From Scyliorhinus canicula (lineage: Eukaryota), in the NCBI RefSeq assembly GCF_902713615.1, contig NC_052164.1, forward strand, positions 40,349,091 to 40,413,090: DNA of 64,000 nt, written 5' to 3'. How positions within the stretch are numbered: the stretch's first letter is position 1; each line of letters starts with the position of its first letter. The translations under genes were made by a program, and so were the position numbers. Below, one piece after another: positions 1 through 36,630 of the stretch. The notes under the pieces were generated by a model. The model did not search any database and was not told where the DNA came from. It worked only from the letters and a program-made list of their open reading frames with translations.

Positions 1-171
1 CGGAGCACCGGGAGGAAACCCAAGCAGACACGGGGAGAACGTGCAGACTCCGGACAATCACTAGAGGCTGGAATTGAACCTGGGTGTGAGGCAGCAGTGT
101 TAATTACTGTGCCAGGTGCTGCCTCTATGATCTGCTGGTAACTTTAACCTCACTTTTCCTCTCTGTCCAAA

Positions 172-390
172 GTAGCACAGTGGTGCAAAGGTCAGCACTG
201 CTGCCTCAGGGCACCGAGGACCCGGGTTCGATCCCGGCTCTGGGTCACTGTCTGTGTGGAGTTTGCATATTCTCCCCGTGTCTGCATGGGTCTCATCTCC
301 ACAACCAAAAGATGTGCTGGTTAGTTGGATTGGTCACACTAAATTGCCCCTTAATTGAAAGAAAGTAATTGGTACTCTATAGTTCTAAAA
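172..390 (+). mobile_element. HE1-like V-SINE (duplicate ~23915-24135)
   Basis: tRNA-like head with GGTTCGATCCC B box and V-domain GTGTGGAGTTTGCA..TTCTCCCCGTGTCTGC. Confidence 0.75.
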
Positions 391-944
391 ATAACTTTTC
401 CTGTCTGTCCCTCTCCCCCGGGACACACTTTTAGATTCCCCTTGAATATCTGCAATGACCGAGGGGATTGCTTTACTGAGGAAGCGAATTCTAAAGACTA
501 ATGAGCCACTGAGACAAACAAATTCCTCCTTACTTCCATCATAAATGGGAGAGTCTTTATTTTTAAACTGTGCACCTTAGTTCTAGAATCCTCTGGAAGA
601 GGGTGCCCTCCTGTCAGCTTGTATCCAGCCAACCCCCCTCAGATTCTGAGACGTTTCAATATTCGAATTAGTTTGATCAGCACACCGGGTGTTTTGAGAT
701 GATGTCATTGAGAGGTAGCATGCAGCTGAGAAATGGGAGAGGTCAAGGATTGATTCTTAGGGGACACCAGAGGTAATGCAGCCGTCCTTCAGCAGGAAGA
801 GAAGCCACTGCAGGAAATTATCTGCCTACGTTGAGATAGATGATAAAAGCAAACGAGGACAGCCCCCCTTCCAGCCCCATCCACCCAGCCTAAAACTTGA
901 CCATTGTGCAGAGGCCTGACCGACCCGTGTCAAGGTGCAGACAT

Positions 945-1074
945 GATATGGAGATGCTGGCGTTGGACTGGGCTGAGCACAGTGAAAAATCTCAACTGAG
1001 GAAGGAGCAGTGCTCCGAAAGCTAGTGTTTGAAGCAAACATGTTGGCCTTTATCCTGGTGTTGTAAGACTTCTT
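945..1074. mobile_element. Short inverted Penelope-like cassette (duplicate at ~24686-24815)
   Basis: Flanked by AAGGTGC(A/T)GACAT repeats (932-944, 1075-1087); contains CTGAGGAAGGAGCAGTGCTCCGAAAGCTAGTG at 996. Confidence 0.75.
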
Positions 1075-1254
1075 AAGGTGCTGACATATAGAGAAGGATC
1101 TGAAGGGGAGGTTAACCTTTGTTACAGCCAAACCGTTCTAACCAACTGCCCCCTTATTGTGCACTTGATGTGAATCCGTTCAAATTGAAGGAAATCATCT
1201 GCTTTTCCAAAATTGATATTAATAATATTGATCCATATTCTTGGAGCTTTGAGT

Positions 1255-1480
1255 TAGAACCGGGCGCTGTTTGTGTTTTTCTATTTGGGATCTTCCCGGC
1301 CCTGGTTGAGGAATTTCCAGCTTTCAGATTCCTTCCCTCACACAGGGAGCAGACTAACTATTCGCATTGTAAAAGAAACAACCGAAAGCAGAATTCACTT
1401 TCCCAACGTAACACCGCACATCGCCAGACCCTCCTCTTAACACGGAGAGCATGGCAGAGAGAGATCCTCCCAACACAGTC
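1255..1480 (+). promoter_or_regulatory. Putative core promoter of IFN gene A
   Basis: kB-like GGGATCTTCCC (1287) and GGAATTTCC (1310); IRF-like AGCTTTCAGATTCC (1319), AACCGAAAGC (1380) and TTCACTTTCCC (1394). Motif order is collinear with the B promoter. Confidence 0.65.
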
Positions 1481-1553
1481 CAGATACACACAGACACACA
1501 TAGAGACAGAGACACACAGATTGACACTGAGAGACAGAGACACACAGAGTGAC

Positions 1554-1811
1554 NNNNNNNNNNNNNNNNNNNNNNNNNNNNNNNNNNNNNNNNNNNNNNN
1601 NNNNNNNNNNNNNNNNNNNNNNNNNNNNNNNNNNNNNNNNNNNNNNNNNNNNNNNNNNNNNNNNNNNNNNNNNNNNNNNNNNNNNNNNNNNNNNNNNNNN
1701 NNNNNNNNNNNNNNNNNNNNNNNNNNNNNNNNNNNNNNNNNNNNNNNNNNNNNNNNNNNNNNNNNNNNNNNNNNNNNNNNNNNNNNNNNNNNNNNNNNNN
1801 NNNNNNNNNNN
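1554..1811. other. Assembly gap following an AC/AG-rich microsatellite
   Basis: N run preceded by ACACAGAGAC-type repeats at 1483-1553. Confidence 0.95.
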
Positions 1812-1968
1812 AGACGCACAGGAGGGTTTAGGCGGTTGCTCCTGCTGAAAGCGGTTGCATTTTCACTCCCGGTGATTCTTTCGGTGAAAATACATTTGTT
1901 CGGAGTTGAACCCGGTTACGGTCAGTGTGTGATCCTCAGCTCCGTGTCTCACTCTGGCTCGGTTCCTC

Positions 1969-4900
1969 ATGTCTCTGGCCAGTATTTGGAGGTTTGGGAC
2001 GGTGTTGTTCCTCTTGTCCGGGACCCTCAGTCTGGGCTGTGAGAGGCTGCAGTTACAGCAAGTTCTCAACACAGAGACACTCAGCAAACTGAATGAAATG
2101 GTGAGTTGAAGCTGGAGCCAGAAACAATTCCCCATCGCACTGGGTCCATTTGTTTTGAAGCATTCTCTCAGGAAAATGGTTTTGGGGTTTGCAGCGCTGC
2201 ACAATTTATGACGTGGAGATGCCGGCGTTGGACTGGGGTGAGCACAGTAAGAAGTCTTACAACACCAGGTTAAAGTCCAACAGGTTTGTTTCAAACACGA
2301 GCTTTCGGAGCACGGCTCCTTCTTCAGGTGAATGGAAAGGCTTGTTCCAGAAATGTTTATATAGACACAGTCAGAGATGCCCCGGAATGCGAGCACCTGC
2401 AGGCAATCAAATCATCAAAGATGCAGAGAGAGAGGTAACTCCAGGTTAAAGAGGTGTGAATTGTCCCAAGCCAATTGTCCCAAGCCAAGCCAATGTGTCT
2501 ATATAAACATTTCTGGAACAAGCCTTTCCATTCACCTGAAGAAGGAGCCGTGCTCCGAAAGCTCGTGTTTGAAACAAACCTGTTGGACTTTAACCTGGTG
2601 TTGTAAGACTTCTTACTGTGCACAATTTATGGTCAGCGAATCTGCAGCATTACTGTTTCTGATCTGGGTTGACACAGTGTTTGTCTTTGCTCTCAGGGCG
2701 GTCGCTTCCCTCGGCAATGTGTCAGGGAGAGGTTTGCGCTGACAACAAAGCCCTTGAATCTGGTGAAACTGTCTGAGGGTTTGCAGGTGAGTGAACACTG
2801 GGGCTTATTATCGTTTATTCCATCAGAAATGTGCGAAAAACACGATAAAGATCAACCACCGTAATCCAGGATGGACAGAGCAGGTCGCTCATTGAAGTTG
2901 TCAGTGGAAATGAGGGAGATCCTGCTTTGAACTCAAACCCCCGGGTAAAGACTCTCTTCCTCGTTCCCTCAGACTGATGTAGGGAATGGAACCTCATTGA
3001 GCTGTGATGCACCCTGTTGGGGGAGCCTGCCAAGTCTGCAGCACCATTCAAAGGTTACTTGTGCCTGCTAATCATCTCAATTCCTTTCATCACCTCACTA
3101 CCCATTAGCATCTCTGTCTTCTCCCTCTTACTCCCTCACTGTCTATCCACTTCTTACCATCAATCGTCCTATACAGTTCAGGCAGGGCCCTTTCATCTGT
3201 GGATTCCACACAACATACCTGTCCACTCTCCATTGCATTCACTCGATGGTCACTGTGTTGATATTGGTGGGATGGTTAGCTCATTGGCTAGTCCAGGATG
3301 CTGCCACCAGCGCTGGTCCAATTCCTGTCTGACTGAGGAAGTGTGAGACCTGCCTCTGCGCCCTTCCCTGAGAGTCGAAGACAATGACAGACTCCCTCTA
3401 CAAATAAACAAAATCAAACTGCCCAGAAAGCAACTCAGGGTGAAGCATCAGATGCCACAGCGTCAGAGGCCCAGGGTGACCGTGAGGAGTTTTCACGTTC
3501 GCTGCGTGTGCGTGGGATTCCTCCGGGTGCTCTGGTTTCCTCTCACAGTCCAAAGATGTGCAGATGAGGTGGATTGGCCATGATAAATTGTCCCTTAGTG
3601 CCCAAGGGTTTGGTGGGGTTATGGGGATGTGGCAGCGGAGTGGAAGGGGAGCTCCATTATTCTAATACTGTCCAGGGTGGCCTCTCAATTTATGTCCTCT
3701 ATAAACTGGAACACAATCCAATAACTATTGTAATATAACATAACTCAATTATCTCTGGTGCAGCACGGTGGCACAGTGGTTACCATTGCTGCCTCAGGGT
3801 GCCGAGGTCCCAGGCTTGATCCCGGCTCTGGGTCATTGTCAGTGTGGAGTTTGCGCATTCTTTCCATGTTTGCGTGGATTTCGCTCCCACAATCCAAAGA
3901 TGTGCAGGGTAGGTGATCTGCCGTGCTAAATTGCCACTTAATTCGAAAAAATGAATTGAGTACTCTAAATTTATTTTTTTTAAACTCATCATCTCTAAAT
4001 ATTCCAACAACACAAACTCCCAGTCAGCCATCACCTCTGCATTCTCAGATTAGATTCATTCAGATATCACCAAGTTCACAACTTTGCAAAATGGATTTTT
4101 CCGATATTCCCCGTGGTGCCACCAAAATATCGAATGGAGAGAGTTCTTTCACTCACAGGGTCCGAGGAAGGAGATATTAATGGATAGGTCTTGTCAGGAG
4201 ATTTTGTGTCAGTGGAGGGGGTTAAGTCTATGTACGAGGAGAAGTTGGGGCCCATATTGAATGACGAGGTGTGAGGCACTTCGCAGGGTGAACTCCACAT
4301 CCACCTGGGCCAGGTTTGGTTTCATCCAGCCTCGGGTAGTTTTGAGGGCGCATTTGACCAATTTCAGAATGAGTCACTTCTTTTTAGGGGGGGGGGGGGG
4401 GGGGACGACAGGTTTACAGTGCTGTTTACATGGTCCGGGTAACAACGTGCATATGTTCTGGTTTTGTCCCGAAGTCATGGGTTTTGGGGTCTCCTTCTTT
4501 AGCACCATGTTGGCGATCCTGAAGATTGAGCTGGAGCCCTAACCTTTAGCGGCCATACTTTGGGTGTCAGACTTATCAGAGCTGCAAACGGGCGCAGGGG
4601 CCAATGGCGTCGCCTTCTCCTTGCTCCTTGCTCGGAGGTGAGTTCTGCTGGGATGGAGTTCTCCGCCTCCATCCAGTGCCTCGGTTTGGCTTGGGGACCT
4701 GATTGAGTTCCTATTCCTTGAAAAAGTCAAAGAAAAGTTGAGGGGAGCAATCGACTGGATTCTATGGGAGATGAAGCCTTTTACTGTCTTTTTCAAGGAA
4801 ATTGTCACCTTTTGTTACTGGGGGTGGGGGGGGGGGGGGGGGAGTTGACGGGAGGGGAGTGGCAGGTTTCATGAGAGGTTGTTTTATGTTTCTGTTTTTC

Positions 4901-5476
4901 ATGTCTGTAGATGTGTTTATTTTTCTTGTTATTTTGAATTTCATAAATGAATTATATTAATGAAAATATTTATTAAAAAAACAAAAATGCATCATCTTTA
5001 ATCTGATTGTGTATATATTCCCTAGACACAGGACAGGATGCAGATTGTCCATCAGACCCTGCGTCATATCAGCAAGATCTACAGCATGAACCTGGGTTCA
5101 GTCACCTGGGACCGGAACAAGGTGGAAAACCTCCGCCTTCTCCTGGACCGACAGCTCAGTGAGCTGGAAGAATGTGTCAGGAAACAGGGCTCAGAGGCCA
5201 GACTGAGGAAAAACTCCACCATTCAAAAATACTTCAGGAAACTGAGGAAGTTTCTCAAACAGAAGGTGGGACAATTGATAATTGAATGTGTGATTATTGG
5301 ATTGTAGTTTATTTGACCGTATTTAGATCTGTTCATTTTCCAATTAGGTTTCCTTAAAATATATTCTGTTTTTCCAGACATTCAGCAACTGTGCTTGGGA
5401 AATAATCCGCGCTGAGACCAGGGCCCGTTTACAACAGCTCCTTTACTTAATGGCACAAGTCCGCAGAAGAAATTGA
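1969..5476 (+). CDS. Type I interferon, subtype A copy 1 (4 exons, 186 aa, 4 Cys)
   Basis: Exons 1969-2100, 2697-2786, 5026-5265, 5378-5476; all introns GT..AG, phase 0. Translation: MSLASIWRFGTVLFLLSGTLSLGCERLQLQQVLNTETLSKLNEM/GGRFPRQCVRERFALTTKPLNLVKLSEGLQ/TQDRMQIVHQTLRHISKIYS...WD...LEECVR...YFRKLRKFLKQK/TFSNCAWEIIRAETRARLQQLLYLMAQVRRRN*. The signal peptide, FP..C, YF..L..FL and CAWE motifs are type I IFN hallmarks; an ATTTA-rich 3' UTR follows. Confidence 0.95.
2296..2330 (-). ncRNA. Minimal hammerhead motif, mirror copy
   Basis: Exact reverse complement of 2533-2567. Confidence 0.7.
2533..2567 (+). ncRNA. Minimal type I hammerhead ribozyme motif (Penelope-type)
   Basis: CAC-CTGAAGA-A-GGAGC-CGT-GCTCC-GAA-AGCT-C-GTG: stem I, CUGANGA core, 5-bp stem II, GAAA, palindromic AGCU helix III, CUC cleavage triplet. 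Confidence 0.75.
3762..3980 (+). mobile_element. HE1-like V-SINE (intron 2 of A; another partial copy at ~3455-3640)
   Basis: GCAGCACGGTGGCACAGTGGTTA head plus V-domain. Confidence 0.75.
4085..4988 (+). mobile_element. L1 3' fragment in intron 2 of gene A (duplicate ~27400-28303)
   Basis: RVNSTSTWARFGFIQ..HMFWFCP remnant, G-run 3' UTR, A-rich tail. Confidence 0.8.
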
Positions 5477-6489
5477 AATAAAATCCAACCGCATGTTCAG
5501 CAGAGACTGGAATAATTTATTTAAATTGGCTGTTATTTATATAATAACAGAATTCTGTGATGACTGACAAAGAGCAAAGAATATCTTGATGTAATTTTCT
5601 ATTTGATTATTTATTCTAATTTATTAATATTTATCGCTGCAATATTTTTATGTTGTGAAATCTTCATCATCTGTGTGCTGAGCTAAATGGATGGCCATGA
5701 TGTCTTTGTACAACAGATGTTAGATTTTTACGGTTGTGAACTCACAAATGTAAAGAAGGTATTTCGATAACACATTTCATACAGACTGAAACAAGAAATA
5801 GTTCTTTCAAAGCTTCACGTTTTTGAGAAGTATTATATTTTATGTCTACAGTACGTCTGGAATTACAATTCTGACAGCTTGGCTCGATGATAACACTGAT
5901 TGGTGGGTCAAACCCCACTTAATTCTCTCTGGGCTCCTTATTGTAGCTGCTGAACCTCCAATCACAATTCTGCACTGGGAATGGTCCAGCCAATCCTCAG
6001 CTCTGCTTTCCCGGTTTCCTCAGTCTCAAGGGTCGGTTGCAGACAAACGACCCCTGACCTCATTCCTGTTTCAGACTCACCTTTACTTTCTGTTCACCAC
6101 AAGGTCAACATTTCAATTAATTCCTCCTCATTTTAATTTATTGATATTTATCATTGTGTTGGCTTTGTGTCATGGATTGCTTAAGTTTTGTACAATGTAT
6201 GAAAAATAAATGTTAATTTATTGATTTTTATTAAATTTTGGGAAATAAATAATATTTTTTTATAAACCTGGCAACTTTTTATACTGAATGAAAGCATATT
6301 TGTTCAAATAAATTGTTTTTGATATCACGCATTTGCTGGAGTAATATTTATTTTTCATGGGTCTTCTCAGGGTTTCCTCAGTCTCAAGGGTGGGTTGCAG
6401 ACAAACGACCCCTGACCCCATTCCTGTTTCAGATTCACCTTTACTTTCTGTTCACCACAAGGTCAACATTTCAATTAATTCCTCCTTTT

Positions 6490-6820
6490 CATAGAATTTA
6501 CAGGGCAGAAGGAGGCCATTCAGCCCATTGAGTCTGCACCGGCTCTTGGAAAGAGCACCCTACCCAAGGTCAACAACGCCACCCTATCCCCATAACCCAG
6601 TAACCCCACCCAACACTAAGGGCAATTTTTGGACACTAAGGACAATTTATCATGGCCAATCCACCTAACCTGTACATCTTTCGACTGTGGGAGGAACCCG
6701 GAGCACCCGGAGGAAACCCACGCACACACGGGGAGGATGTGCAGACTCTGCACAGACAGTGACCCAAACCGGAATCGAACCTGGGACACTGGAGCGGTGA
6801 AGCAATTGTGCTATCCACAA
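6490..6820 (-). mobile_element. HE1-like V-SINE (duplicate ~29806-30135)
   Basis: Reverse complement of the SINE body with LINE-derived tail ..AAATTCTATGA. Confidence 0.8.
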
Positions 6821-7144
6821 TCCTCATTTTAATTTATTGATATTTATCATTGTGTTGGCTTTGTGTCATGGATTGCTAAAGTTTTGTACAATTTATGAAA
6901 AATAAATGTTAATTTATTGATTTTTATTAAATTTTGGGAAATAAATAATATTTTTTTTATAAACCTGGCAACGTTTTATACTGAATGAAAGCATATTTGT
7001 TCAAATAAATTGTTTTTGATATCACGCACTTACTGGAGTAATATTTATTTTTCATGGGTCTCTTCACTATAAATGTGTTATAATTGAACAAGGTAGCATT
7101 AGGATGGAAAAGGTATTAATGATTTTAGTGCACTTAAGAGTGGT

Positions 7145-8600
7145 GATTATCTGCTTTCACAGCTATCAAAGGAAGGAGAGGGTCTTGGAGTTGGTGAATA
7201 TTGACTAGGATGGGCACACGGTGTGGATATATCAGAACATTAGGATTGAGCTGGCGCAGAGCTGTGCGGACTTCAACAAGGTGAAGGTGATGCAATTTGC
7301 CATGGTTTACCTGGTGTGATTGTGGGTCACAATGGACTCGAAAGATTATTTTTTCAACATGCTGGAGCTGGCAGAGGCCTTCACCAGAGAGAAGAAGCTG
7401 GGACTGGTCTGAGGAGCATGATTTGGGATTCTGAGTTTGAAGGTGGATGATTTTACAGTGTATTTATGCCTCATTTTAGTATATTTCTTTCTCTTGGGGT
7501 TTGGGCTGTAAGAACGTGGGATTGACACATTTCTTGGCTCAGAGACAAGCTTGCTAATAATGTTGGGTTTTGGGTTTTGGGAGTTCGTCAGAAGGGAGTG
7601 GGTGGTTGTTGCTTTTAGGGAAGTAATGCAGGGTGACACTGGGAGGGGCTCACCTTGCTAGCGGAAGGAGACGGTGTGGCTAGTGAATGAGAGAGGAGTG
7701 GAGGAAGAGGCTGTTGGGCTAGATCATGTGAGGCACAATCAGTCGAGCTGTTTTACTGTTTGTTTGGTAGGGGCATGGGGCCCGGTATGGTGTTCCTACA
7801 AGAAACTCACCTGTGAGTGCCGGACCATCCAGGTTGGGGAAGCCCTGGGTGAGCCAGGTTTTCCACTCAGGGTTTGACGGATGGGTCGGGGGGGAGTGGA
7901 TTTCGGTCAGCAAAATTATTCGCTTTCAGTCGGGGACTCTGGCTGATCAGGGGATGGTTATGTGATGGTTACAGGTATGCTGGGGGGGGGGGGGGGGTGG
8001 GGTCGCCATGGGCTGGTTTACATCACTCGGCTAAATCGCTGGCTTTTAAAGCAGACCAAGCAGGCCAGCAGCACTGTTCGATTCCCATACCAGCCTCCCC
8101 GGACAGGCGCTGGAATGTGGCGACTAGGGGCTTTTCACAGTAACTTCATTGAAGCCTACTCGTGGCAATAAGTGATTTTCATTTCATTTCATGGTGTGAG
8201 TGAATGTGTATGCCCCAAATAGGAGCAATGTCAAGTCTATGGGGTGCTTGCTGGCTGCAATACCGGAGATGGACACCCACCAATTGATTTTAGGGGCGAG
8301 ATTTTAATTTCGTCTTAGATCCGAAGCTGGACTGTTCCCGATTGAGGTCACTAACCCAATCAGGAATTACAAGGGTGTTGGCTGCATTCATGGAGGAGAC
8401 AACAGACAAACCCTTAGCATGGTTTAGTGACTTGATTGAGCTTTAGTATCTCAAGAAGTTCAAGTTTACAGTGAGGGGGTTGTTAGATGGGTTCCACCGT
8501 AGATGACGACTCTTCATATTGTTCTTTAAGGAATGGGTCACTGCTGGCTGTTAGTGAGGTTAGGGGTGTGTGTTATTTGGGTTGTATTTCTGTTACTGGG
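7145..8600 (+). mobile_element. Highly degenerate L1 fragments with nested SINE (duplicate ~30460-31900)
   Basis: Patchy resemblance to the ORF1 end, endonuclease and 3' end of the L1s in this window. Confidence 0.5.
8010..8192 (+). mobile_element. Second tRNA-derived SINE family (related copies at ~31325-31497 and ~49145-49325 minus)
   Basis: GTTCGATTCC B box and (TTTCA)n tail. Confidence 0.6.
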
Positions 8601-9564
8601 GTTATTGTTATGTTGCCTGGACAGGAGTTATGAAGCGAAGCTGGCCAGGCTGGGGTTAGTTTCCTTCGAGCAGAGAAGGCAGAGTGGAACCTGATTGAGC
8701 TGTGTAAAATTATGTGGGACATAGACAGGACAAATAGGAAGAAACGTTCCAAAATATTATTGAAAGTTGTGGTTTATTTCTTCTCTCTCTTCCGCCTCTG
8801 CTCGCTGAACTTGGATTCAAACCATCTGGGCACACTGCATTTTCTACTTCTAGACACATGCAAAATGTAATCCTTCACTTCCTCTATTCCATTGTTTCTC
8901 ACTTCAGCCTTTCATTTGGTCGTTCCATTCTACAACTCGATGGCTCATCTTTCACTTTGCTCTGCAAAGCACTGAGCTATGAGTCTGATTGTTGCCGTTT
9001 GATCACACTCGAGTATAATTTGTCTTCATTCATCTACAAATGGTGCTAGTATTTTAGAGGATTATGTTTTACTTATTATTATCAAATATCCCCTGTCTTT
9101 GTCCTCATTCAATTAATAAATTACCTTTGTTTTACATACAAGATGGAGAGACTTCAAAACTTTTTCTAAAGAATTTTTCTCCATATTCAAAATGTTTTTT
9201 TGGAATTATAGAGTATGTAATCCTGTCTTGGATTCAGAGGTTGGAGGGTTCAAATGCACTTGAGAGTCATGGTTCAGACATGACCCCTGGCTCTGAATTA
9301 TGGGTTGTCATCCAACCACACATTTGTGCCCAATGATCAAGATTCTCAGCTCTCCATTGTATTATCTGGACGATTGCATAAAATCTCACTGATTTACAGG
9401 ATCCTTTCAAATCAGCCTCTCAACTCAGATAAAGATGGTCATGGCCAAGAAAATAATGTACAAGTATGAATGGTTAATTTGCTTGTGACTCCTTCCTTTA
9501 CTCCGGAGGGGGAGAATATGAGGTTTTGTGTCAACTAGATTAATGTCAGGTTGTCCTTCTGTTT

Positions 9565-12839: not shown

Positions 12840-13380
12840 ATGATGTGGAGATGCCGGCGTTGGACTGGGGTGGGCACAGTAAGAAGTCCAACAAGTTTGT
12901 TTCAAATCACTAGCTTTCATACCTCTTCATTCACCGGATGAAGGAGCAGTGCTCCGAAAGCTAGTGTTTGAAACAAACATGTTGGACTTTAACCTGGTGT
13001 TTTAAGACTTCTTACTGTGCTCACCGCAGTCCAACGCCCGGCATCTCCACATCATGACTAGCTTTTGGTGCATTCCTCCTTCCTCAGGTGAATGGAGAGG
13101 TAGGTTCCAGAAACATTTATACAGACAAAGTCAAAGATGCAAGATGATACTTTGAATGCGGGTAAATAAGTCTTCACAGAGCCAGAGACAGGGGTAACCC
13201 CAGGTAAAAGAGGTGTGAATTGTCTCAAGCCAGGACAGTTGGTAGGATTTCGCAAGCCCCCCAGGTGGGGGGGGGGGGGGGGGGGGGGGGGGGGTGAATG
13301 TAATGCGACATGAATCCCAGGTCCCGGAACTTGGCTATAAGTTTCTGCTCTGCAATTCCGCGTTGTTGCGCGTCCTGTGA
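12840..13380 (-). mobile_element. Penelope-like 3' fragment with a nested opposite-orientation copy
   Basis: Same terminal repeat; the nested piece 12918-13056 is flanked by ACTAGCTTT repeats. Absent from the paralogous site at ~21020. Confidence 0.75.
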
Positions 13381-23572: not shown

Positions 23573-23719
23573 TGTGGAGATTTCGGCGTTGGACTGGGGT
23601 GAGCACAGTAAGAAGTCTTACAACACCAGGTTAAAGTCCAACAGGTTTGTTTCAAACACGAGCTTTCGGAGCGCAGCTCCTTCTTCAGGTGACCTAGTGT
23701 TGTAAGACGTCTTACTGTG
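23573..23719. mobile_element. Penelope-like cassette inserted in a SINE
   Basis: Flanked by CATCTTGGGACTGTGA repeats; has a short inverted tail. Confidence 0.75.
23657..23691 (-). ncRNA. Minimal hammerhead motif
   Basis: Minus strand reads CAC-CTGAAGA-A-GGAGC-TGC-GCTCC-GAA-AGCT-C-GTG; only the stem II loop differs. Confidence 0.7.
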
Positions 23720-24995
23720 CATCTTGGGACTGTGAGAGGAAACCGGAGCACCGGGAGGAAACCCAAGCAGACACGGGGAGAACGTGCAGACTCCGCACAA
23801 TCACCAGAGGCTGGAATTGAACCTGGGTGTGAGGCAGCAGTGTTAATTACTGTGCCAGGTGCTGCCTCTATGATCTGCTGGTAACTTTCACCTCACTTTT
23901 CCTCTCTGTCCAAAGTAGCACAGTGGTGCAAAGATCAGCACTGCTGCCTCAGGGCACCGAGGACCCGGGTTCGATACCGGCTCTGGGTCACTGTCTGTGT
24001 GGAGTTTGCATATTCTCCCCGTGTCTGCATGGGTCTCATCTCCACAACCAAAAGATGTGCTGGTTAGTTGGATTGGTCACACTAAATTGCCCCTTAATTG
24101 GAAAAAAGTAATTGGTACTCTATAGTTCTAAAAAAAACTTTTCCTGTCTGTCCCTCTCCCCCGGGACACACTTGTAGATTCCCCTTGAATATCTGCAATG
24201 ACCGAGGGGTTGCTTTACTGAGGAAGCGAATTCGAAAGACTAATGAGCCACTGAGACAAACAAATTCCTCCTTACTTCCATCATAAATGGGAGAGTCTTA
24301 ATTTTTAAACTGTGCACCTTAGTTCTAGAATCCTCTGGAAGAGGGTGCCCTCCTGTCAGCTTGTATCCAGCCAACCCCCCTCAGATTCTGAGACGTTTCA
24401 ATATTCGAATTAGTTTGATCAGCACACCGGGTGTTTTGAGATGATGTCATTGAGAGGTAGCATGCAGCTGAGAAATGGGAGAGGTCAAGGATTGATTCTT
24501 AGGGGACACCAGAGGTAATGCAGCCGTCCTTCAGCAGGAAGAGAAGCCACTGCAGGAAATTCTCTGCCTACGTTGAGATAGATGATAAAAGCAAACGAGG
24601 ACAGCCCCCTTCCAGCCCCATCCACCCAGCCTAAAACTTGACCATTGTGCAGAGGCCTGACCGACCCGTGTCAAGGTGCAGACATGATATGGAGATGCTG
24701 GCGTTGGACTGGGCTGAGCACAGTGAAAAGTCTCAACTGAGGAAGGAGCAGTGCTCCGAAAACTAGTGTTTGAAGCAAACATGTTGGACTTTATCCTGGT
24801 GTTGTAAGACTTCTTAAGGTGCAGACATATAGAGAAGGATCTGAAGGGGAGGTTAACCTTTGTTACAGCCAAACCGTTCTAACCAACTGCCCCCTTATTG
24901 TGCCCTTGATGTGAATCCGTTCAACTTGAAGGAAATCATCTGCTTTTCCAAAATTGATATTAATAATATTGATCCATATTCTTGGAGCTTTGAGT

Positions 24996-25219
24996 TAGAA
25001 CCGGGCGCTGTTTGTGTTTTTGTATTTGGAATCTTCCCGGCCCTGGTTGAGGAATTTCCAGCTTTCAGATTCCTTCCCTCACACAGGGAGCAGACTAACT
25101 ATTCTCCTTGTAAAAGAAACAACCGAAAGCAGATTTCACTTTCCCAACGTAACACCGCTGATCGCCAGACTCTCCTCTTAACACGGAGAGCATGGCAGAG
25201 AGAGATCCTCCCAACACAG
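24996..25219 (+). promoter_or_regulatory. Putative core promoter of IFN gene A'
   Basis: Duplicate of 1255-1480 with the same kB/IRF motifs. Confidence 0.6.
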
Positions 25220-25550
25220 NNNNNNNNNNNNNNNNNNNNNNNNNNNNNNNNNNNNNNNNNNNNNNNNNNNNNNNNNNNNNNNNNNNNNNNNNNNNNNNNN
25301 NNNNNNNNNNNNNNNNNNNNNNNNNNNNNNNNNNNNNNNNNNNNNNNNNNNNNNNNNNNNNNNNNNNNNNNNNNNNNNNNNNNNNNNNNNNNNNNNNNNN
25401 NNNNNNNNNNNNNNNNNNNNNNNNNNNNNNNNNNNNNNNNNNNNNNNNNNNNNNNNNNNNNNNNNNNNNNNNNNNNNNNNNNNNNNNNNNNNNNNNNNNN
25501 NNNNNNNNNNNNNNNNNNNNNNNNNNNNNNNNNNNNNNNNNNNNNNNNNN
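25220..25550. other. Assembly gap at the paralogous position
   Basis: N run. Confidence 0.95.
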
Positions 25551-25710
25551 AGACGCGCAGGAGAGTTTAGGCGGTTGCTCCTGCTGCAAGCGGTTGCATT
25601 TTCACTCCCGGTGATTCTTTCGGTGAAAATACAACAATTGTTCGGAGTTGAACCCGGTTACGGTCAGTGTGTGATCCTCAGCTCCGTATCTCACTCTGGC
25701 TCGGTTGCTC

Positions 25711-28700
25711 ATGGCTCTGGCCAGTATTTGGAGGTTTGTGACGGTGTTGTTCCTCTTGTCCGGGACCCTCAGTCTGGGCTGTGAAAGGCTGCAGTTACAG
25801 CAAGTTCTCAACACAGAGACACTCAGCAAACTGAATGAAATGGTGAGTTGAAGCTGGAGCCAAGAAACAATTCCCCATCGCACTGGGTCCATTTGTTTTG
25901 AAGCATTCTCTCAGGAAAATGGTTTTGGGGGTTGCAGCGCTGCACAGTTTATGGTCAGCGAATCTGCAGCATTACTGTTTCTGATCTGGGTTGACACAGT
26001 GTTTGTCTTTGCTCTCAGGGCGGTCGCTTCCCTCGGCAATGTGTCAGGGTGAGGTTTGCGCTGACAACCAAGACCTTGAATCTGGTGAAACTGTCTGAGG
26101 GTTTGCAGGTGAGTGAACACTGGGGCTTATTATCATTTATTCCATCAGAAATGTGCGAAAAACACGATAAAGATCAACCACCAGGATGGACAGAGCAGGT
26201 CGTTCATTGAAGTTGTCAGTGGAAATGCGGGAGCTCCTGCTTTGAACTCAACCCCCCGGGTAAAGACTCTCTTCCTCGTTCCCTCAGACTGATGTAGGGA
26301 ATGGAACCGCATTGAGCTGTGATGCACCCTGTTGGGGGAGCCTGCCAAGTCTGCAGCATCATTCAAAGGTTACTTGTGCCTGCTAATCATCTCAATTCCT
26401 TTCATCACCTCACTACCCATTAGCATCTCTGTCTTCTCCCTCTTACTCCCTCACTGTCTATCCACTTCTTACCATCAATCGTCCTATACAGTTCAGGCAG
26501 GGCCCTTTCATCTGTGGATTCCACACAACATACCTGTCCACTCTCCATTGCATTCACTCGATGGTCACTGTGTTGATATTGGTGGGATGGTTAGCTCATT
26601 GGCTAGTCCAGGATGCTGCCACCAGCGCTGGTCCAATTCCTGTCTGACTGAGGAGGTGTGAGACCTGCCTCTGCGCCCTTCCCTGAGAGTCGAAGACAAT
26701 GACAGACTCCCTCTACAAATAAACAAAAACAAACTGCCCAGAAAGCAACTCAGGGTGAAGCATCAGATGCCACAGCGCCAGAGGCCCAGGGTGACCGTGT
26801 GGAGTTTTCACGTTCGCTCCGTGTGCGTGGGATTCCTCCGGGTGCTCTGGTTTCCTCTCACAGTCCAAAGATGTGCAGGTGAGGTGGATTGGCCATGATA
26901 AATTGTCCCTTAGTGCCCAAAGGTTTGGTGGGGTTATGGGGATGTGGCAGCGGAGTGGAAGGGGAGCTCCATTATTCTAATACTGTCCAGGGTGTTCTCT
27001 CAATTTATGTCCTCTATAAACTGGAACAGAATCCAATAACTACTGTAATATAACATAACTCAATTATCTCTGGTGCAGCACGGTGGCACAGTGGTTAGCA
27101 TTGCTGCCTCAGGGTGCCGAGGTCCCAGGCTTGATCCCGGCTCTGGGTCATTGTCAGTGTGGAGTTTGCGCATTCTTTCCATGTTTGCGTGGATTTCGCT
27201 CCCACAATCCAAAGATGTGCAGGGTAGGTGATTTGCCGTGCTAAATTGCCACTTAATTCGAAAAAATGAATTGAGTACTCTAAATTTATTTTTTTAAAAC
27301 TCATCATCTCTAAATATTCCAACAACACAAACTCCCAGTCAGCCATCACCTCTGCATTCTCAGATTAGATTCATTCAGATATCACCAAGTTCACAACTTT
27401 GCAAAATTGATTTTTCCGATATTCCCCGAGGTGCCACCAAAATCTCGAATGGAGAGAGTTATTTCACTCACAGGGTCCGAGGAAGGAGATATTGATGGAT
27501 GGGTCTTGTCAGGAGATTTGGTGTCAGTGGAGGGGGTTAAGTCGATGTGCGAGGAGGAGTTGGGGCCCATATTGAATGACGAGGTGTGAGGCACTTCGCA
27601 GGGTGAACTCCACATCCACCTGGGCCAGGTTTGGTTTGATACAGCCTCGGGTAGTTTTGAGGGCGCATTTGACCAATTTCAGAATGAGTCACTTCTTTTT
27701 AGTGGGGGGGGGGGGGGGGGGGGGGACGACAGGTTTACAGTGCTGTTTACATGGTCCGGGTAACAACGTGCATATGTTCTGGTTTTGTCCCGAGGTCATG
27801 GGTTTTGGGGTCTCCTTCTTTAGCACCATGTTGGCGATCCTGAAGATTGAGCTGGAGCCCTAACCTTTAGCGGCCATACTTTGGGTGTCAGACTTATCAG
27901 AGCTGCAAACGGGCGCAGGGGCCAATGGCGTCGCCTTCTCCTTGCTCATTGCTCGGAAGTGAGTTCTGCTGGGATGGAGTTCTCCGCCTCCATCCAGTGC
28001 CTCGGTTTGGCTTGGGGACCTGATTGAGTTCCTATTCCTTGAAAAAGTCAAAGAAAAGTTGAGGGGAGCAATCGACGGGATTCTATGGGGGATGAAGCCT
28101 TTTACTGTCTTTTTCAAGGAAATTGTCACCTTTTGTTACTCGGGATGGGGGGGGGGGGAGTTGACGGGAGGGGAGTGGCAGGTTTCATGAGAGGTTGTTT
28201 TATGTTTCTGTTTTTCATATCTGTAGATGTGTTTATTTTTCTTGTTATTTTGAATTTCATAAATGAAATATATTAATGAAAATATTTATTAAAAAAACAA
28301 AAATGCATCATCTTTAATCTGATTGTGTATATATTCCCCAGACACAGGACAGGATCCAGATTGTCCATCAGACCCTGCGTCACATCAGCAAGATCTACAG
28401 CATGAACCTGGGTTCAGTCACCTGGGACCGGAACAAGGTGGAAAACCTCCGCCTTCTCCTAGACCGACAGCTCAGTGAGCTGGAAGAATGTGCCAGGAAA
28501 CAGGGCTCAGAGGCCAGACTGAGGAAAAACTCCACCATTCAAAAATACTTCAGGAAACTGAGGAAGTTTCTCAAACAGAAGGTGGGACAATTGATAATTG
28601 ACTCTGTGATTATTGGATTGTAGTTTATTTGACCGTATTAGATCTGTTCATTTTCCAATTGGGTTTCCTTAAAATATATTCTGTTTTTCCAGACATTCAG

Positions 28701-28773
28701 CAACTGTGCTTGGGAAATAATCCGCGCTGAGACCAGGGCCCGTTTACAACAGCTCCTTTACTTAATGGCATAA
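25711..28773 (+). CDS. Type I interferon, subtype A copy 2 (4 exons, 180 aa; C-terminus shortened by CAA>TAA)
   Basis: Exons 25711-25842, 26019-26108, 28342-28581, 28693-28773. The TAA at 28771-28773 lies 6 codons before the paralogous TGA. Confidence 0.92.
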
Positions 28774-31700
28774 GTCCGCAGAAGAAATTGAAATAAAATC
28801 CAACCGCATGTTCAGCAGAGACTGGAATAATTTATTTAAATTGACTGTTATTTATAGAATAACAGAATTCTGTGGTGACTGACAAAGAGCAAAGAATATC
28901 TTGATGTAATTTTCTATTTGATTATTTATTCTAATTTATTAATATTTATCGCTGCAATATTTTTATGTTGTGAAATCTTCATCATATGTGTGCTAAGCTA
29001 AATGGATGGCCATGATGTCTTTGTACAACAGATGTTAGATTTTTACGGTTGTGAACTCACAAATGTAAAGAAGGTATTTCGATGACACATTTCAGACAGA
29101 CTGAAACAAGAAATAGTTCTTTCAAAGCTTCACGTTTTTGAGAAGTATTATATTTTATGTCTACAGTACGTCTGGAATTTCAATTCTGACAGCTTGGCTC
29201 GATGATAACACTGATTGGTGGGTCAAACCCCACTTAATTCTCACTGGGCTCCTTATTGTAGCTGCTGAAACTCCAATCACAATTCTGCACTGGGAATGGT
29301 CCAGCCAATCCTCAGCTCTGCTTTCCCGGTTTCCTCAGTCTCAAGGGTCGGTTGCAGACAAACGACCCCTGACCTCATTCCTGTTTCAGACTCACCTTTA
29401 CTTTCTGTTCACCACAAGGTCAACATTTCAATTAATTCCTCCTCATTTTAATTTATTGATATTTATCATTGTGTTGGCTTTGTGTCATGGAATGCTTAAG
29501 TTTTGTACAATTTATGAAAAATAAATGTTAATTTATTGATTTTTATTAAATTTTGGTTAATAAATATATATTTTTCATAAACCTGGCAACGTTTTATACT
29601 GAATGAAAGCATATTTGTTCAAATAAATTGTTTTTGATATCACGCATTTGCTGGAGTAATATTTATTTTTCATGGGTCTTCTCAGGGTTTTCCTCAGTCT
29701 CAAGGGTGGGTTGCAGACAAACGACCCCTGACCCCATTCCTGTTTCAGATTCACCTTTACTTTCTGTTCACCACAAGGTCAACATTTCAATTAATTCCTC
29801 CTTTTCATAGAATTTACAATGGAGAAGGAGGCCATTCAGCCCATCGAGTCTGCACCGGCTCTTGGAAAGAGCACCCTACCCAAGGTCAACAACTCCACCC
29901 TATCCCCATAACCCAGTAACCCCACCCAACACTAAGGGCAATTTTTGGACACTAAGGACAATTTATCATGGCTAATCCACCTAACCTGCACATCTTTGGA
30001 CTGTGGGAGGAACCCGGAGCACCCGGAGGAAACCCACGCACACACGGGGAGGATGTGCAGACTCCGCACAGACAGTGACCCAAGCCGGAATCGAACCTGG
30101 GTCCCTGGAGCGGTGAAGCGATTGTGCTATCCACAATCCTCATTTTAATTTATTGATATTTATCATTGTGTTGGCTTTGTGTCATGGATTGCTAAAGTTT
30201 TGTACAATTTATGAAAAATAAATGTAAATTTATTGATTTTTATTAAATTTTGGGAAATAAGTAATTTTTTTTATAAATCTGGCAACTTTTTATACTGAAT
30301 GAAAGGATATTTGTTCAAATAAATTGTTTTTGATATCACGCATTTTCTGGAGTAATATTTATTTTTCATGGGTCTTCTTCACTATAAATGTGTTATAATT
30401 GAACAAGTTAGCATTAGGATGGAAGAGGTATTAATTATTTTAGTGCACTTAAGAGTGGTGATTATCTGCTTTCACTGCTATCAAAGGAAGGAGAGGGCCT
30501 TGGAGTAGGTGAATATTGACTAGGATGGGCACACGGTGTGGATATATCAGAACATTAGGATTGAGCTGGCGCAGAGCTGTGCGGACTTCAACAAGGTGAA
30601 GGTGATGCAATTTGCCATAGTTTACCCGGTGTGATTGTGGGTCACAATGGACTCGAAAGATTATTTTTTCAACATGCTGGAGCTGGCAGAGGCCTTCACC
30701 AGAGAGAAGAAGCTGGGGCTGGTCTGAGGAGCATCATTTGGGATTCTGCGTTTGAAGGTGGGACGATTTTATAGTGTATTTGTGCCTCATTTTAGTATAT
30801 TTCTTTCTCTTGGGGTTGGGGCTGTAAGAACGTGGGATTGACACATTTCTTGGCTCAGAGACAAGCTTGCTAATAATGTTGGGATTTGGGTTTCGGGAGT
30901 GCATCAGAAGGGAGTGGGTGGTTGTTGCTTTTAGGGATGTAATGCAGGGTGATGCTGGGAGGGGGTCACCTTGCTAGCGGAAGGAGACGGTGTGGCTAGT
31001 GAATGAGAGAGGAGTGGAGGAAGAGGCTGTTGGGCTAGATCATGTGAGGCACAATCGATCGAGCTGTTTTACTGTTTGTTTGGTAGGGGCATGGGGCCCG
31101 GTATGGTGTTCCTACAAGAAACTCACCTGTGGGTGCCGGACCATCCAGGTTGGGGAAGCCCTGGGTGAGCCAGGTTTTCCACTCAGGGTTTGACAGATGG
31201 GTCGGGGGGGAGTGGATTTCGGTCAGCAAAATGATTCGCTTTCAGTCGGGAATTCTGGCTGATCAGGGGATGGTTATGTGATGGTTACAGGTATGCTGGG
31301 GGGGCGGTTTCGCCATGGGCAGGTTTAGCTCACCAGGCTAAATCGCTGGCTTATAAAGCAGACCAAGCAGGCCAGCACTGTTCGATTCCCATACCAGCCT
31401 CCCTGGACAGGCGCTGGAATGTGGCGACTGGGGGCTTTTCACAGTAACTTCATTGAAGCCTACTCGTGGCAATAGGTGATTTTCATTTCATTTCATGGTG
31501 TGAGTGAATGTGTATGCCCCAAATTGGAGCAATGTCAAGTCTATGGGGTGCTTGCTGGCTGCAATACCGGAGATGGACACCCACCAATTGATTTTAGGGG
31601 CGAGATTTTAATTTCGTCTTAGATCCGAAGCTGGACTGTTCCCGATTGAGGTCACTAACCCAATCAGGAATTACAAGGGTGTTGGCTGCATTCATGGAGG

Positions 31701-34700
31701 AGACAACAGACAATGTTTTAGTGACTTGATTGAGCTTTAGTATCTCAAGAAGTTCAAGTTTACAGTGAGGGGGTTGTTAGATGGGTTCCACCGTAGATGA
31801 CGACTCTTCATATTGTTCTTTAAGGAATGGGTCACTGCTGGCTGTTAGTGAGGTTAGGGGTGTGTGTTATTTGGGTTGCATTTCTGTTACTGGGGTTATT
31901 GTTATGGGAAGGATGTGATTGCAGTAGAAAGAGTGCAGAGGAGATTCACCAGCATGTTGCCTGGACAGGAGTTATGAAGCGAAGCTGACCAGGCTGGGGT
32001 TAGTTTCCTTCGAGCAGAGAAGGCTGAGTGGAAGCTGATTGAGCTGTGTAAAATTATGTGGGACATAGACAGGACAAATGCAATCCTTCACTTCCTCTAT
32101 TCCATTGTTTCTCACTTCAGCCTTTCACTTGGTCGTTCCATTCTACAACTCAATGGCTCATCTTTCACTTTGCTCTGCAAAGCACTGAGCTATGATTCTG
32201 ATTGTTGCCGTTTGATCACACGCGAGTATAATTTGTCTTCATTCATCTACAAATAGTGCTAGTATTTTAGAGAATTATGTTTTACTTTTTATTATCAAAT
32301 ATCCCCTGTCTTTGTCCTCATTCAATTAATAAATTACCTTTGTTTTACAGACAAGATGGAGAGACTTCAAAACTTTTTCTAAAGATTTTTTCTCCATATT
32401 CAAAATGTTTTTTTGGAATTATAGAGTAAGTAATCCTGTCTTGGATTCAGAGGTTGGAGGGTTCAAATGCACTGGAGAGTCATAGTTCAGACATGACCCC
32501 TGCCTCTGAATTATGGGTTGTCATCCAACCACACATTTGTGCCCAATGATCAAGATTCTCAGTTCCCCATTGTATTATTTGGGCGATTGCATAAAATCTC
32601 ACTGATTTACAGGATCCTTTCAAATCAGCCTCTCAACTCAGATAAAGATGGTCATGCCAAGAAAATAATGTACAAGTTTGAATGGTTAATTTGCTTGTGA
32701 CTCCTTCCTTTACTCCGCAGGGGGAGAATATGAGGTTTTGTGTCAATTAGATTAATGTCAGGTTGTCCTTCTGTTTTTTAAAATAAATTTAGAGCACACA
32801 ATTCATTTTTCCAATTGAGGGGCAATTTTGCGTGGCCAATCCACCTACCTTGCACATCTTTTGGGTTGTGGGTGCAACCCACGCAAACACGGGGAGAATG
32901 TGCAAATACCACACGGACAGTGACCCAGAGCTGGGACCACCGTGACGTGCGCCCGCTGTACTAACCACTGCGCCACCATGCTGTGCTATCCATCTGTGTT
33001 TTAAATTAATAATCTTTATTGTCACAAGTAGGCTTACATTAATATTGCAATCAAGTCGCTGTGCAGATCCCCTCGTCTCCACTTACCGGCGCCTTTTCAG
33101 GTACACGGAGGGAAAATTCAGAATGTCCAAATTACCCAACAGCACGTCTTTCGGAACTTGTGGAAGGAAACCGGAGCACGCAGAGGGAACCCACGCAGAC
33201 ACTGGGAGAACAGACTGTGCACAGACAGTGATCCAAGCTGGGAATCGAATCTGGGACCTGTCGCTATGAAAGGAGAGTGCTAACCACTGTGTTTTATACT
33301 GTTGTCTGTACCTTTGCATACTTCAAACAGAATACTATTGAAACGTTTAACACAGGTAACTTTATATTTGAGATGAACAAAGGACAAACACAAGTGCACA
33401 CTTAAATCCAAGTTTATTTTCAATCATAATAAAACAGTTATCCCTTAAATTACCCCAGCTATAGTATGGTTTAATACAACATGAGCCGGGGGCAGCAGAG
33501 TCTTGCAGTGTTTGGCAATGCTGCCTCGGGGCCCTGGGTCACTGTCCTTGTGGAGTTTACACATTCTCCCCATGTCTGTGTGGGTTAGAAATGGATACAG
33601 CCCAGAGATCCTTGTGAAGTTAGATTTGGCGCTCTTGGTGGACAACGCATTTTGCAAGAAGGTGGGCATGGTGACAGAGAACTGTGTGGAGTTCAAACAA
33701 AAGGGGAGGTCTCGCTCTGCATGTTTCGGGAGGCATTGAAGGCAGTGGTCTGGCAGCAGTAATACAATATATGGCCCACAGGGACAAGGTTAAGAGCACA
33801 GAAAGACAGAGGTTGGTGGGTGACATTGTGGAAGTGGACTGACTGCACTCAGTGGCTCTGACTAGAGAGTTGTTAGCAGAGAGGAAGAAGCTACAAGTGG
33901 AGTTTGATCTATTAATGACATTCATCTATCAACAGGGTTATTTTATGAGTATGGGGAGTAGGCCAGCCACCTGCTAACCCATCAGTTGATGCCATAGGCG
34001 GCCATGTGGGACATAACACAGGTGATGGATGAGGAAGCAGGTTTAGCGATGACACCGGAGAAAACTAATGAAGCATTCAAGGTCTTTTACCCGGGGCTGT
34101 ATTGGTCCGGGCCCCAAGGGGAGGATGCAGAGCTGCTGCACTTTTATATTCCCGGAGGTGGAAAGGGGGAAGGGACAGGGTGTGGAGGCATCACTGGGAC
34201 TGCCGGAGATAATGGAGTCCGTTGGGTTGATGCCGTCGGTGAAGGCACCAGGGCTAGATGGCTTTCCGGTTGAATTTTATAAAACAGTTTTGGCTGCGTT
34301 GGCATCCATCTCCAGCGAAAGTATAAAGATTCGCTGGCACGGGGGCAAGCTGCCCACTTGGCTGGCTCAGGCATCAATCTCACTGATCCCAATGAAGAAA
34401 AAGGATAAAGTGGAGTGTGGGACTTACAGGGCCATCTCCCTGCTAAACGCTGGTGTGACATTGTCGGCTGTGGTTCTCTTCTCAAGCATTTGCTTGTCAC
34501 CAGTGGATGGGGCGGGTGGCGGGGGGTTTCTGGAATGGGAGGAGTGGGAGGGGTGATGCAAGGGGGGTTGATTTGGGGGAATGGCTGTGTTAGTCAAGGG
34601 GAAAATGGACAAATGACAACCTGTTTGTAATTTGGTTGTATCTTCGGCTGACTCTGTGATTTGTTGATGGTAGAAATAAAATATATATATTTTAAAATAC

Positions 34701-36063: not shown

Positions 36064-36630
36064 ATGATGTGGAGATGCCGGCGTTGGACTGGGGTGGGCA
36101 CACAAAGAAGTCTTACAACACCAGGTTAAAGTCCAACAAGTTTGTTTCAAATCACTAGCTTTCATACCTCTTCATTCACCGGATGAAGGAGCAGTGCTCC
36201 GAAAGCTAGTGTTTGAAACAAACATGTTGGACTTTAACCTGGTGTTTTAAGACTTCTTACTGTGCTCACCCCAGTCCAACGCCCGGCATCTCCACATCAT
36301 GACTAGCTTTTGGTGCATTCCTCCTTCCTCAGGTGAATGGAGAGGTAGGTTCCAGAAACATTTATACAGACAAAGTCAAAGATGCAAGATGATACTTTGA
36401 ATGCGGGTAAATAAGTCTTCACAGAGCCAGAGACAGGGGTAACCCCAGGTAAAAGAGGTGTGAATTGTCTCAAGCCAGGACAGTTGGTAGGATTTCGCAA
36501 GCCCAGGCCAGATGGTGGGGGGTGAATGTCATGCGACATGAGTCCCAGGTCCCGGTTGAGGCCGTACTCATGTGTGCGGAACTTGGCTATATGTTTCTGC
36601 TCTGCAATTCCGCGTTGTTGCGCGACCTGT
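36064..36630 (-). mobile_element. Penelope-like 3' fragment (duplicate), with GIY-YIG C-terminal remnant
   Basis: Minus strand 36629-36525 reads QVAQQRGIAEQKHIAKFRTHEYGLNRDLGLMSHDI, matching the R..E...I....T...G.N tail of Penelope GIY-YIG endonucleases. Confidence 0.8.

Follow-up and report, generated by a model that had tools for sequence, protein, structure and literature searches.

The window analysed here is a stretch of 64,000 nucleotides (nt) of the genome of the shark Scyliorhinus canicula (RefSeq assembly GCF_902713615.1, contig NC_052164.1, positions 40,349,091 to 40,413,090, forward strand), in which a type I interferon gene, gene A, carries an insert of a short repeat element in its first intron. 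All positions below are those of the window. Gene A lies on the forward strand and its spliced open reading frame (ORF) is intact. Exon 1 (1969–2100) includes the start codon and the signal peptide in 44 codons that stay open up to a GTGAGT donor, and exon 2 (2697–2786) adds 30 codons to the spliced frame. Exon 3 (5026–5265) matches the Pfam family Interferon PF00143 with an E-value of 2e-12 (residues 1–79 scanned), and the piece containing exon 4 (5378–5476) matches the same family with an E-value of 4e-5. Intron 1 (2101–2696) begins with GT at 2101 and ends with a pyrimidine tract and the AG of 2695–2696. The insert, together with one copy of the duplication that flanks it, has extended this intron from 175 to 596 nt; 110 nt separate it from the donor and 65 nt from the acceptor.

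A segmental duplication within the window has given gene A a paralogue, A'. The duplicated regions (1–8612 with A, 23744–31906 with A') are about 97% identical, and both include runs of N at matching places 5' of exon 1 (1554–1811 and 25220–25550, respectively). The coding sequences differ at 7 of the 186 codons compared, and one of these differences is a stop codon in A', six codons before the normal end (28771–28773, within A' exon 4 at 28693–28791), where A has CAG. Positions at which A differs from A' include 2188, 2625, 2728, 2747, 2751 and 2813.

The insert comprises 408 bp (2211–2618) and is bracketed by a direct repeat, TGCACAATTTATG, present at 2198–2210 and 2619–2631 with all 13 positions matching. 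In A' the target occurs once, as TGCACAGTTTATG at 25941–25953, and the flanks align on both sides; the site in A' is therefore empty. At each junction three bases, ATG at 2208–2210 and TGC at 2619–2621, are common to the element ends and the target, so the true duplication measures between 7 and 13 bp. The 13-bp target-site duplication proposed in an earlier reading made from the sequence alone (the sequence-only reading) was thus recovered, with its extent bounded by these overlaps. The same reading had offered A' as a natural empty-site control: the empty site is indeed there, but the codon differences and the early stop make the control imperfect, and by its sequence A' is not a like-for-like counterpart of A. 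An empty site was also found in DNA run X4 of a second sample, in a 354-nt contig that joins 2197 directly to 2619 (2086–2197 and 2619–2860). Its variants (2160A, 2163G, 2747C, 2797G and 2813A) match neither A nor A', and the contig may represent an insert-free allele of gene A, one allele of A' or a further paralogue outside the window; contigs are in any case unable to show the absence of the insert in the second sample.

Most of the insert consists of two inverted arms. The left arm (2242–2369, reverse strand) and the right arm (2494–2621, forward strand) are complementary at 128 of 128 positions, as had been claimed, are separated by a spacer of 124 nt, and can be extended to 131 nt at 99% complementarity; the last three nucleotides of the right arm lie within the duplication. 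The insert is nevertheless asymmetric, in that 31 nt at its left end (2211–2241, reverse strand) have no partner in the right arm. These nucleotides were assigned to the element because other copies of the same family carry this tailed end. With the reverse complement of 2211–2493 taken as a 283-nt reference in element sense, the left copy (2211–2493, reverse strand, 3' end to the left) covers positions 1–283 and is made up of the tail, the left arm and the spacer. The right copy, which is identical with the right arm and tail-less, covers reference positions 125–252. The two are joined 5' to 5' between 2493 and 2494. Reference position 131 holds the TATA box and 167 the first core nucleotide of a hammerhead motif (C3); the predicted cut follows 195, and the untailed and tailed ends fall at 252 and 283, respectively. 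Other family copies run three bases beyond the tailed end, to the equivalent of 2208 in the window. Each copy has its own TATATAA box, that of the left copy (2357–2363, reverse strand) facing exon 1 in antisense and that of the right copy (2500–2506, forward strand) facing exon 2 in sense. The spacer is further upstream element sequence and is multi-copy in the DNA as well as the RNA runs from two organisms. It contains a perfect 14-nt tandem duplication at 2459–2486 (two units of AATTGTCCCAAGCC), where also the DNA depth rises.

Six further places in the window match the arm. These belong to the loci at 949–1082 (duplicated in the A' region at 24690–24816), 12845–13050 (with a duplicate at 36069–36295), 23574–23720 and 38766–38973. 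All five independent loci, the focal one included, are head-to-head pairs with the 3' ends outward, and four of the five combine a tailed copy, ending at 280–283 of the reference, with an untailed one that ends at 250–253, which means that the tail is one-sided in these four. Three of the other loci have duplications of their own, of 12, 13 and about 16 bp (24673/24816, 23557/23720 and 38755/38982), and each pair is therefore taken as the product of one insertion event. The lengths of the arms (29, 86 and 128 nt) and the inner junctions vary between copies. The short copies have their 5' ends clustered between 162 and 164 on the reference, 31–33 nt downstream of the TATATAA box. This is the spacing expected of a transcription start, and it suggests that the family may be copied from short RNAs starting just before the hammerhead.

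The family copies in the window differ from each other by 3–10%, and the copy common to A and A' (949–1082 and 24690–24816) is about 89–94% identical to the focal copy. The identity of the two focal arms and the presence of this older, shared copy together place the focal insertion after the A/A' duplication and make it young. The locus at 12845–13050 and its duplicate each adjoin a divergent copy (13057–13232 and 36302–36477; 76% identity) in which the hammerhead has decayed (G12 to A, helix II broken). Such a divergent copy beside a younger twin suggests that the family has inserted into copies of itself more than once.

Outside the window the family is very abundant. In a DNA run of the second sample the depth summed over contigs, which is not a copy number, was 0.1–1.8 million over the cassette and about 12 over the unique flanks, a 10^4–10^5-fold difference. 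It indicates a family estimated at roughly 10^4–10^5 copies, many of them fold-backs. The depth falls from the 3' end inward, and the DNA contigs of the same sample include many other arm-to-arm junctions, clustering at 2319–2333 with 2530–2537. The repeat is present also in the DNA run of a second organism and in several RNA-like runs. One further match, in a JGI metagenome contig of 1001 bp (L001:145–225), is a truncated 3' end of the repeat with about 90% identity, accompanied by a second repeat common to the window; this contig is probably host fish DNA in an environmental sample. The insert had been presented as a distinctive cassette of gene A. It instead has the standard head-to-head form of a hyper-abundant family, seen at every family locus in the window and known from related elements (cf. 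PMC8557442), and it is ordinary for the genome and not a gene-specific device.

The right copy includes, on the strand of the interferon pre-mRNA, a minimal type I hammerhead motif at 2533–2567, whose core and helices I and II can be read directly and whose predicted cut lies after C2564. Helix I is formed by CAC and GUG (2533–2535 with 2565–2567). It is followed by the core nucleotides C3–A9, CUGAAGA (2536–2542), an extra A between A9 and G10.1 (2543), helix II GGAGC/GCUCC with the loop CGU (2544–2548 with 2552–2556), G12–A14 as GAA (2557–2559), A15.1-GC-U16.1 as AGCU (2560–2563) and C17 (2564). The conserved core (C3 U4 G5 A6 N7 G8 A9, G12 A13 A14, A15.1–U16.1, H17) is complete. The left copy has the mirror motif at 2296–2330 on the reverse strand (left position equals 4863 minus right position), antisense in the interferon pre-mRNA. 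Each motif is in sense orientation within its own copy, and both copies have the 3' end on the outside. The sequence-only reading was accordingly right in placing an intact minimal motif in each arm, one of them on the pre-mRNA strand. DNA variants of the family that exceed 10% change C17 to A or fall in the helix II loop, both tolerated positions.

The motif shows the marks described for the hammerheads of Penelope-like elements (PLEs; PMC4209133), namely the extra base A2543, the G10.1–C11.1 pair (G2544–C2556) and the palindromic AGCU at 2560–2563, the last as foreseen in the claim of a palindromic helix III. In being type I, with a full core, AGCU for helix III and a short helix I, it agrees with the minimal hammerheads of metazoan PLEs, while helix II, of 5 bp in the shark motif, is 7–8 bp long in the PLE hammerheads of Schistosoma (PMC4209133). 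Dual minimal hammerheads on opposite strands, 100–700 bp apart, were reported already in 2014 (PMC4209133). Helix III of the shark motif consists of one pair with a 2-nt loop, and a ribozyme-compatible fold is the minimum free energy (MFE) structure of the isolated 67-nt segment, at −13.1 kcal/mol. Rfam scans of the whole window and of 2100–2750 found no hammerhead match, either at the gathering thresholds or at E-values up to 10, and returned only two chance-level matches. Such silence would be unsurprising for a motif nearly without a helix III of its own; since the Rfam models give no score, the assignment as a hammerhead is based on anatomy. The hammerhead and the TATA box are common to every family copy and would, if anything, serve the element's own RNA. 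On the forward strand at 2316–2333, antisense to the hammerhead box, the sequence reads CTCCTTCTTCAG followed directly by GTGAAT, which resembles an acceptor tract running straight into a donor site and would occur in every intronic copy of the same orientation.

The anatomy of the insert corresponds to that of Penelope-type retroelements. PLE insertions are strongly 5'-truncated and often accompanied by an adjacent inverted and 5'-truncated copy, and their hammerheads lie in terminal repeats (Craig et al., PMC8557442). A tail of 30–40 bp is often present at one end only (PMC8557442; tails are described also in PMC11167929), and in the commonest structure of Drosophila Penelope inverted terminal repeats of variable size flank the element (PMC2377424). 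The shark insert has four of these structural hallmarks, the inverted 5'-truncated pair, the one-sided tail of 31 nt, the terminal-repeat hammerhead and the variable target duplication, and on these its probable membership in the PLEs is based. Its likeness to Penelope/Poseidon-type insertions (PMC8557442, PMC2377424) thus extends from the head-to-head copies to the long and variable duplication, and together with the hammerhead marks it fits the Penelope-type origin suggested earlier. It differs from them in that the insert has no ORF, the copies are tiny (283 and 128 nt) and the family looks gene-less in the window. The promoter is also different, as that of Drosophila Penelope is TATA-less (PMC2377424) and in the shark element a TATA box precedes the hammerhead.

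[quoted passage not shown] These positions place the distal start 85–92 nt past the cut; in the shark element the tailed end lies 85–88 nt and the untailed end 54–57 nt past the predicted cut, the former in good agreement with Anolis. The purified Anolis protein cleaves and extends both target strands and uses two internal starts of reverse transcription, the tail being the sequence between them (PMC11167929).

The insert is therefore read as very probably the result of one recent retrotransposition of a short, abundant Penelope-like element into intron 1 of gene A after the A/A' duplication, most likely with the standing of a neutral passenger. In the proposed course of events a PLE enzyme would nick the two target strands at a distance of at most about 13 bp, and both 3' ends would prime reverse transcription of family RNA. 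Priming at the distal start would give the left copy, with the 31-nt tail and 283 nt copied back, and priming at the proximal start the tail-less right copy, with 128 nt copied back. Joining of the two cDNAs 5' to 5' between 2493 and 2494 would then leave a perfect fold-back within the target duplication.

Several observations weigh against this reading. The family could be tied to no gene for a PLE reverse transcriptase or a GIY-YIG endonuclease, and the cassette itself is without an ORF. Pfam searches of ten long ORFs of the window found no PLE domain; their sole match (55797–56372, forward strand; Endonuclease/Exonuclease/phosphatase family, E-value 1e-8) is probably a remnant of a long interspersed nuclear element (LINE). 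The frame from the hammerhead to the tail, compared with 1.8 billion proteins, retrieved only a spurious ORF of 175 amino acids on a 1-kb metagenome contig with a truncated family copy. The lack of an Rfam hammerhead match belongs to the same list, as does the fact that neutrality is assumed, no examined run expressing gene A. Finally, the perfect identity of the arms fits a single snap-back cDNA equally well as two primings. The 38 codons of the frame from hammerhead to tail (2211–2324, reverse strand) had served to test whether an element ORF begins in the CUGAUGA box, where that of the Anolis PLE begins, and they gave no link to a reverse transcriptase.

The snap-back origin is the alternative that fares best, and as a whole it is considered unlikely without being far-fetched. 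According to it, one cDNA primed at the left nick would have been copied 283 nt back, folded 128 nt from the untailed end and been copied outward, its end annealing to the target through the TGC microhomology. Three features favour such a course: the arms are identical at 128 of 128 positions although the family copies in the window differ by 3–10%, three-base microhomologies are present at both junctions, and the right copy ends exactly at the tail-less end position. The last feature, however, recurs in other twins (C1, C4 and C6), which fits a defined second start of reverse transcription better (PMC11167929). That both target strands can be extended is known from in vitro work (PMC11167929), and arms without differences would also be expected if both RNAs had come from a single young source copy. 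The twins in the window are too few and too old for shared private variants to separate the two courses. Under either course the PLE-type retrotransposition itself is retained.

When transcribed, the insert is predicted to form a long double-stranded RNA (dsRNA). Intron 1 folds with the full stem of 128 bp (MFE −323 kcal/mol, z-score −21.8), in accordance with the stem that had been anticipated in the pre-mRNA, and the hairpin alone reaches −267 kcal/mol compared with −13 kcal/mol for the ribozyme fold, which likewise agrees with the suggestion that the stem would sequester the ribozyme. The arms would zip into the hairpin upon transcription of the right arm, loop out the insert and bury its only sense hammerhead, and the hairpin would be removed with the intron in the nucleus, where ADAR may edit it. 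As the hairpin would join the ends of the insert, the effective spacing of the splice sites should change little.

A role for this stem in interferon biology had been proposed, in which the pre-mRNA or the excised intron of gene A supplies a dsRNA of 128 bp that engages ADAR, PKR or RIG-I-like receptors and modulates the response or the output of gene A. The proposal gains from the very large margin by which a long perfect stem is predicted and from the intact state of the host gene, and leakage of intronic inverted-repeat dsRNA into the cytoplasm is known for cases of failed splicing or debranching (PMC8313407, PMC13189227). On the other hand, the stem is intronic, and human intronic inverted-repeat dsRNAs, removed by nuclear splicing, were judged non-immunogenic (PMC12695637). 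With an estimated 10^4–10^5 family copies, many of them fold-backs, one more adds little to the dsRNA load, and with about one family locus per 10 kb in the window the placement in this intron is as expected by chance. The comparison with human inverted-repeat Alu dsRNAs, substrates of ADAR1 and MDA5, is instructive in both directions: also there two inverted retroelement copies in one transcript are predicted to form a long intramolecular duplex, but the shark stem is perfect (128 of 128) and derives from one insertion event instead of two independent ones. It is furthermore intronic, of the class reported as non-immunogenic (PMC12695637); the Alu dsRNAs are those of human introns and untranslated regions.

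The RNA data came from two run searches and from one alignment that covered an RNA-like contig set and a raw-read RNA run, and gave this proposal no expression to build on. The RNA-like runs matching the locus carry about 30% of the words, and none of the runs listed in the searches was recorded as an RNA source of the locus. Coverage in both RNA data sets was confined to the repeat, and depth was zero over exon 1, exon 2 and the unique parts of the intron on either side. Of the aligned reads of the raw-read run, 85% pass into dissimilar sequence and hence stem from other loci. RNA run X22 showed differences at frequencies of 11–47% that are under 1% in the DNA contigs (2271, 2306, 2323/2540 and 2585). 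Of these five RNA-enriched differences, three (2271 T>C, 2323 T>C and 2540 A>G) read as A-to-G on the sense strand of the element, in reads that come from other loci and are without matched DNA. The remaining two, C>T at 2306 (G12 to A in the hammerhead core) and G>C at 2585, are not editing changes but are enriched in RNA as well, and genomic copies with G at N7 exist in the window (996–1020). Highly expressed variant copies explain the RNA differences as well as editing does, and a few variant copies seem to dominate the family transcripts. An involvement of the stem in the interferon response is thus unsupported and very improbable. Its more specific form, in which the hairpin acts as an infection-induced self-dsRNA, either as a brake through hyper-edited nuclear retention or as an amplifier through intron retention that feeds PKR or MDA5, so that the outputs of A and A' would differ, is regarded as about equally improbable. 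Most likely the insert is a neutral passenger.

A similarly remote standing is given to an effect of the insert as a DNA signal, whether through its outward TATA boxes as intronic sense and antisense promoters or through exonisation of the splice-like sequence at 2316–2333. The boxes are there (TATATAA at 2500, forward, and 2363, reverse), with the 5' ends of the short copies at the 31–33 nt downstream noted above, and both an acceptor-like and a donor-like motif lie on the forward strand. Against it, the raw-read RNA run has zero depth at 2648–2817 and upstream of 2172, the splice-like motifs lie inside the stem, and a transcript initiated in the intron would find no start codon in exon 2.

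Self-cleavage of the interferon pre-mRNA after C2564 by the forward-strand hammerhead, with lowered or altered timing of expression as its consequence, is hardly credible, even though nothing is missing from the core nucleotides or from helices I and II and the ribozyme-compatible fold is the preferred one of the isolated segment. The one-pair helix III with its 2-nt loop calls for a partner, and the only other motif lies on the opposite strand; since the pre-mRNA has a single sense motif, no dimer can form in cis. Dimers of minimal PLE hammerheads have low activity and single motifs show no detectable cleavage in vitro (PMC4209133), and the dimer action that the sequence-only reading names for such hammerheads would not arise in cis in this pre-mRNA. 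The motif also lies about 40 nt inside the stem, which would nucleate at the loop end before the motif is transcribed and leave it essentially no kinetic window. No pile-up of read starts was seen at 2565 or at the mirror position 2298 among the family reads of one oligo-dT RNA run with depths of about 30–220, and the same negative result was obtained for Anolis (PMC11167929). A cut within an intron would moreover matter little after commitment to splicing.

The remaining candidates concern the nature of the element. A fold-back DNA transposon or miniature inverted-repeat transposable element would account for long terminal inverted repeats with a flanking duplication, but it is scarcely tenable and was rejected, as the tail is one-sided, the terminal repeats are not symmetric, the arm lengths (29, 86 and 128 nt) vary, the duplications (12–16 bp) are not short and of fixed length, and the DNA depth declines from the 3' end inward as in 5' truncation. 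Metazoan retrozymes (PMC7229834) are likewise short, non-autonomous and abundantly transcribed retroelements with type I hammerheads, but they consist of tandem direct repeats with hammerheads on the same strand and a circular RNA of 170–400 nt; in the shark element the motifs are inverted, on opposite strands, with no tandem repeat and no unit between two sense cuts, and this identity was rejected too. An assembly artefact was likewise rejected, on the evidence of the one-sided tail, the duplication and the recurring layout.

The locus is a clean and dated record of a PLE-type insertion, in which both target strands would have been extended from two starts of reverse transcription and a one-sided tail was left, and the A/A' duplication provides it with a built-in empty site. 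It also serves as a warning that the many hammerhead "cassettes" of the shark genome are one repeat family and not devices of particular genes. As things stand, its value is that of annotation. If A-specific editing, retention or cleavage were true of induced cells, the insert would be relevant to the question of how interferon genes with introns cope with self-dsRNA or exploit it.

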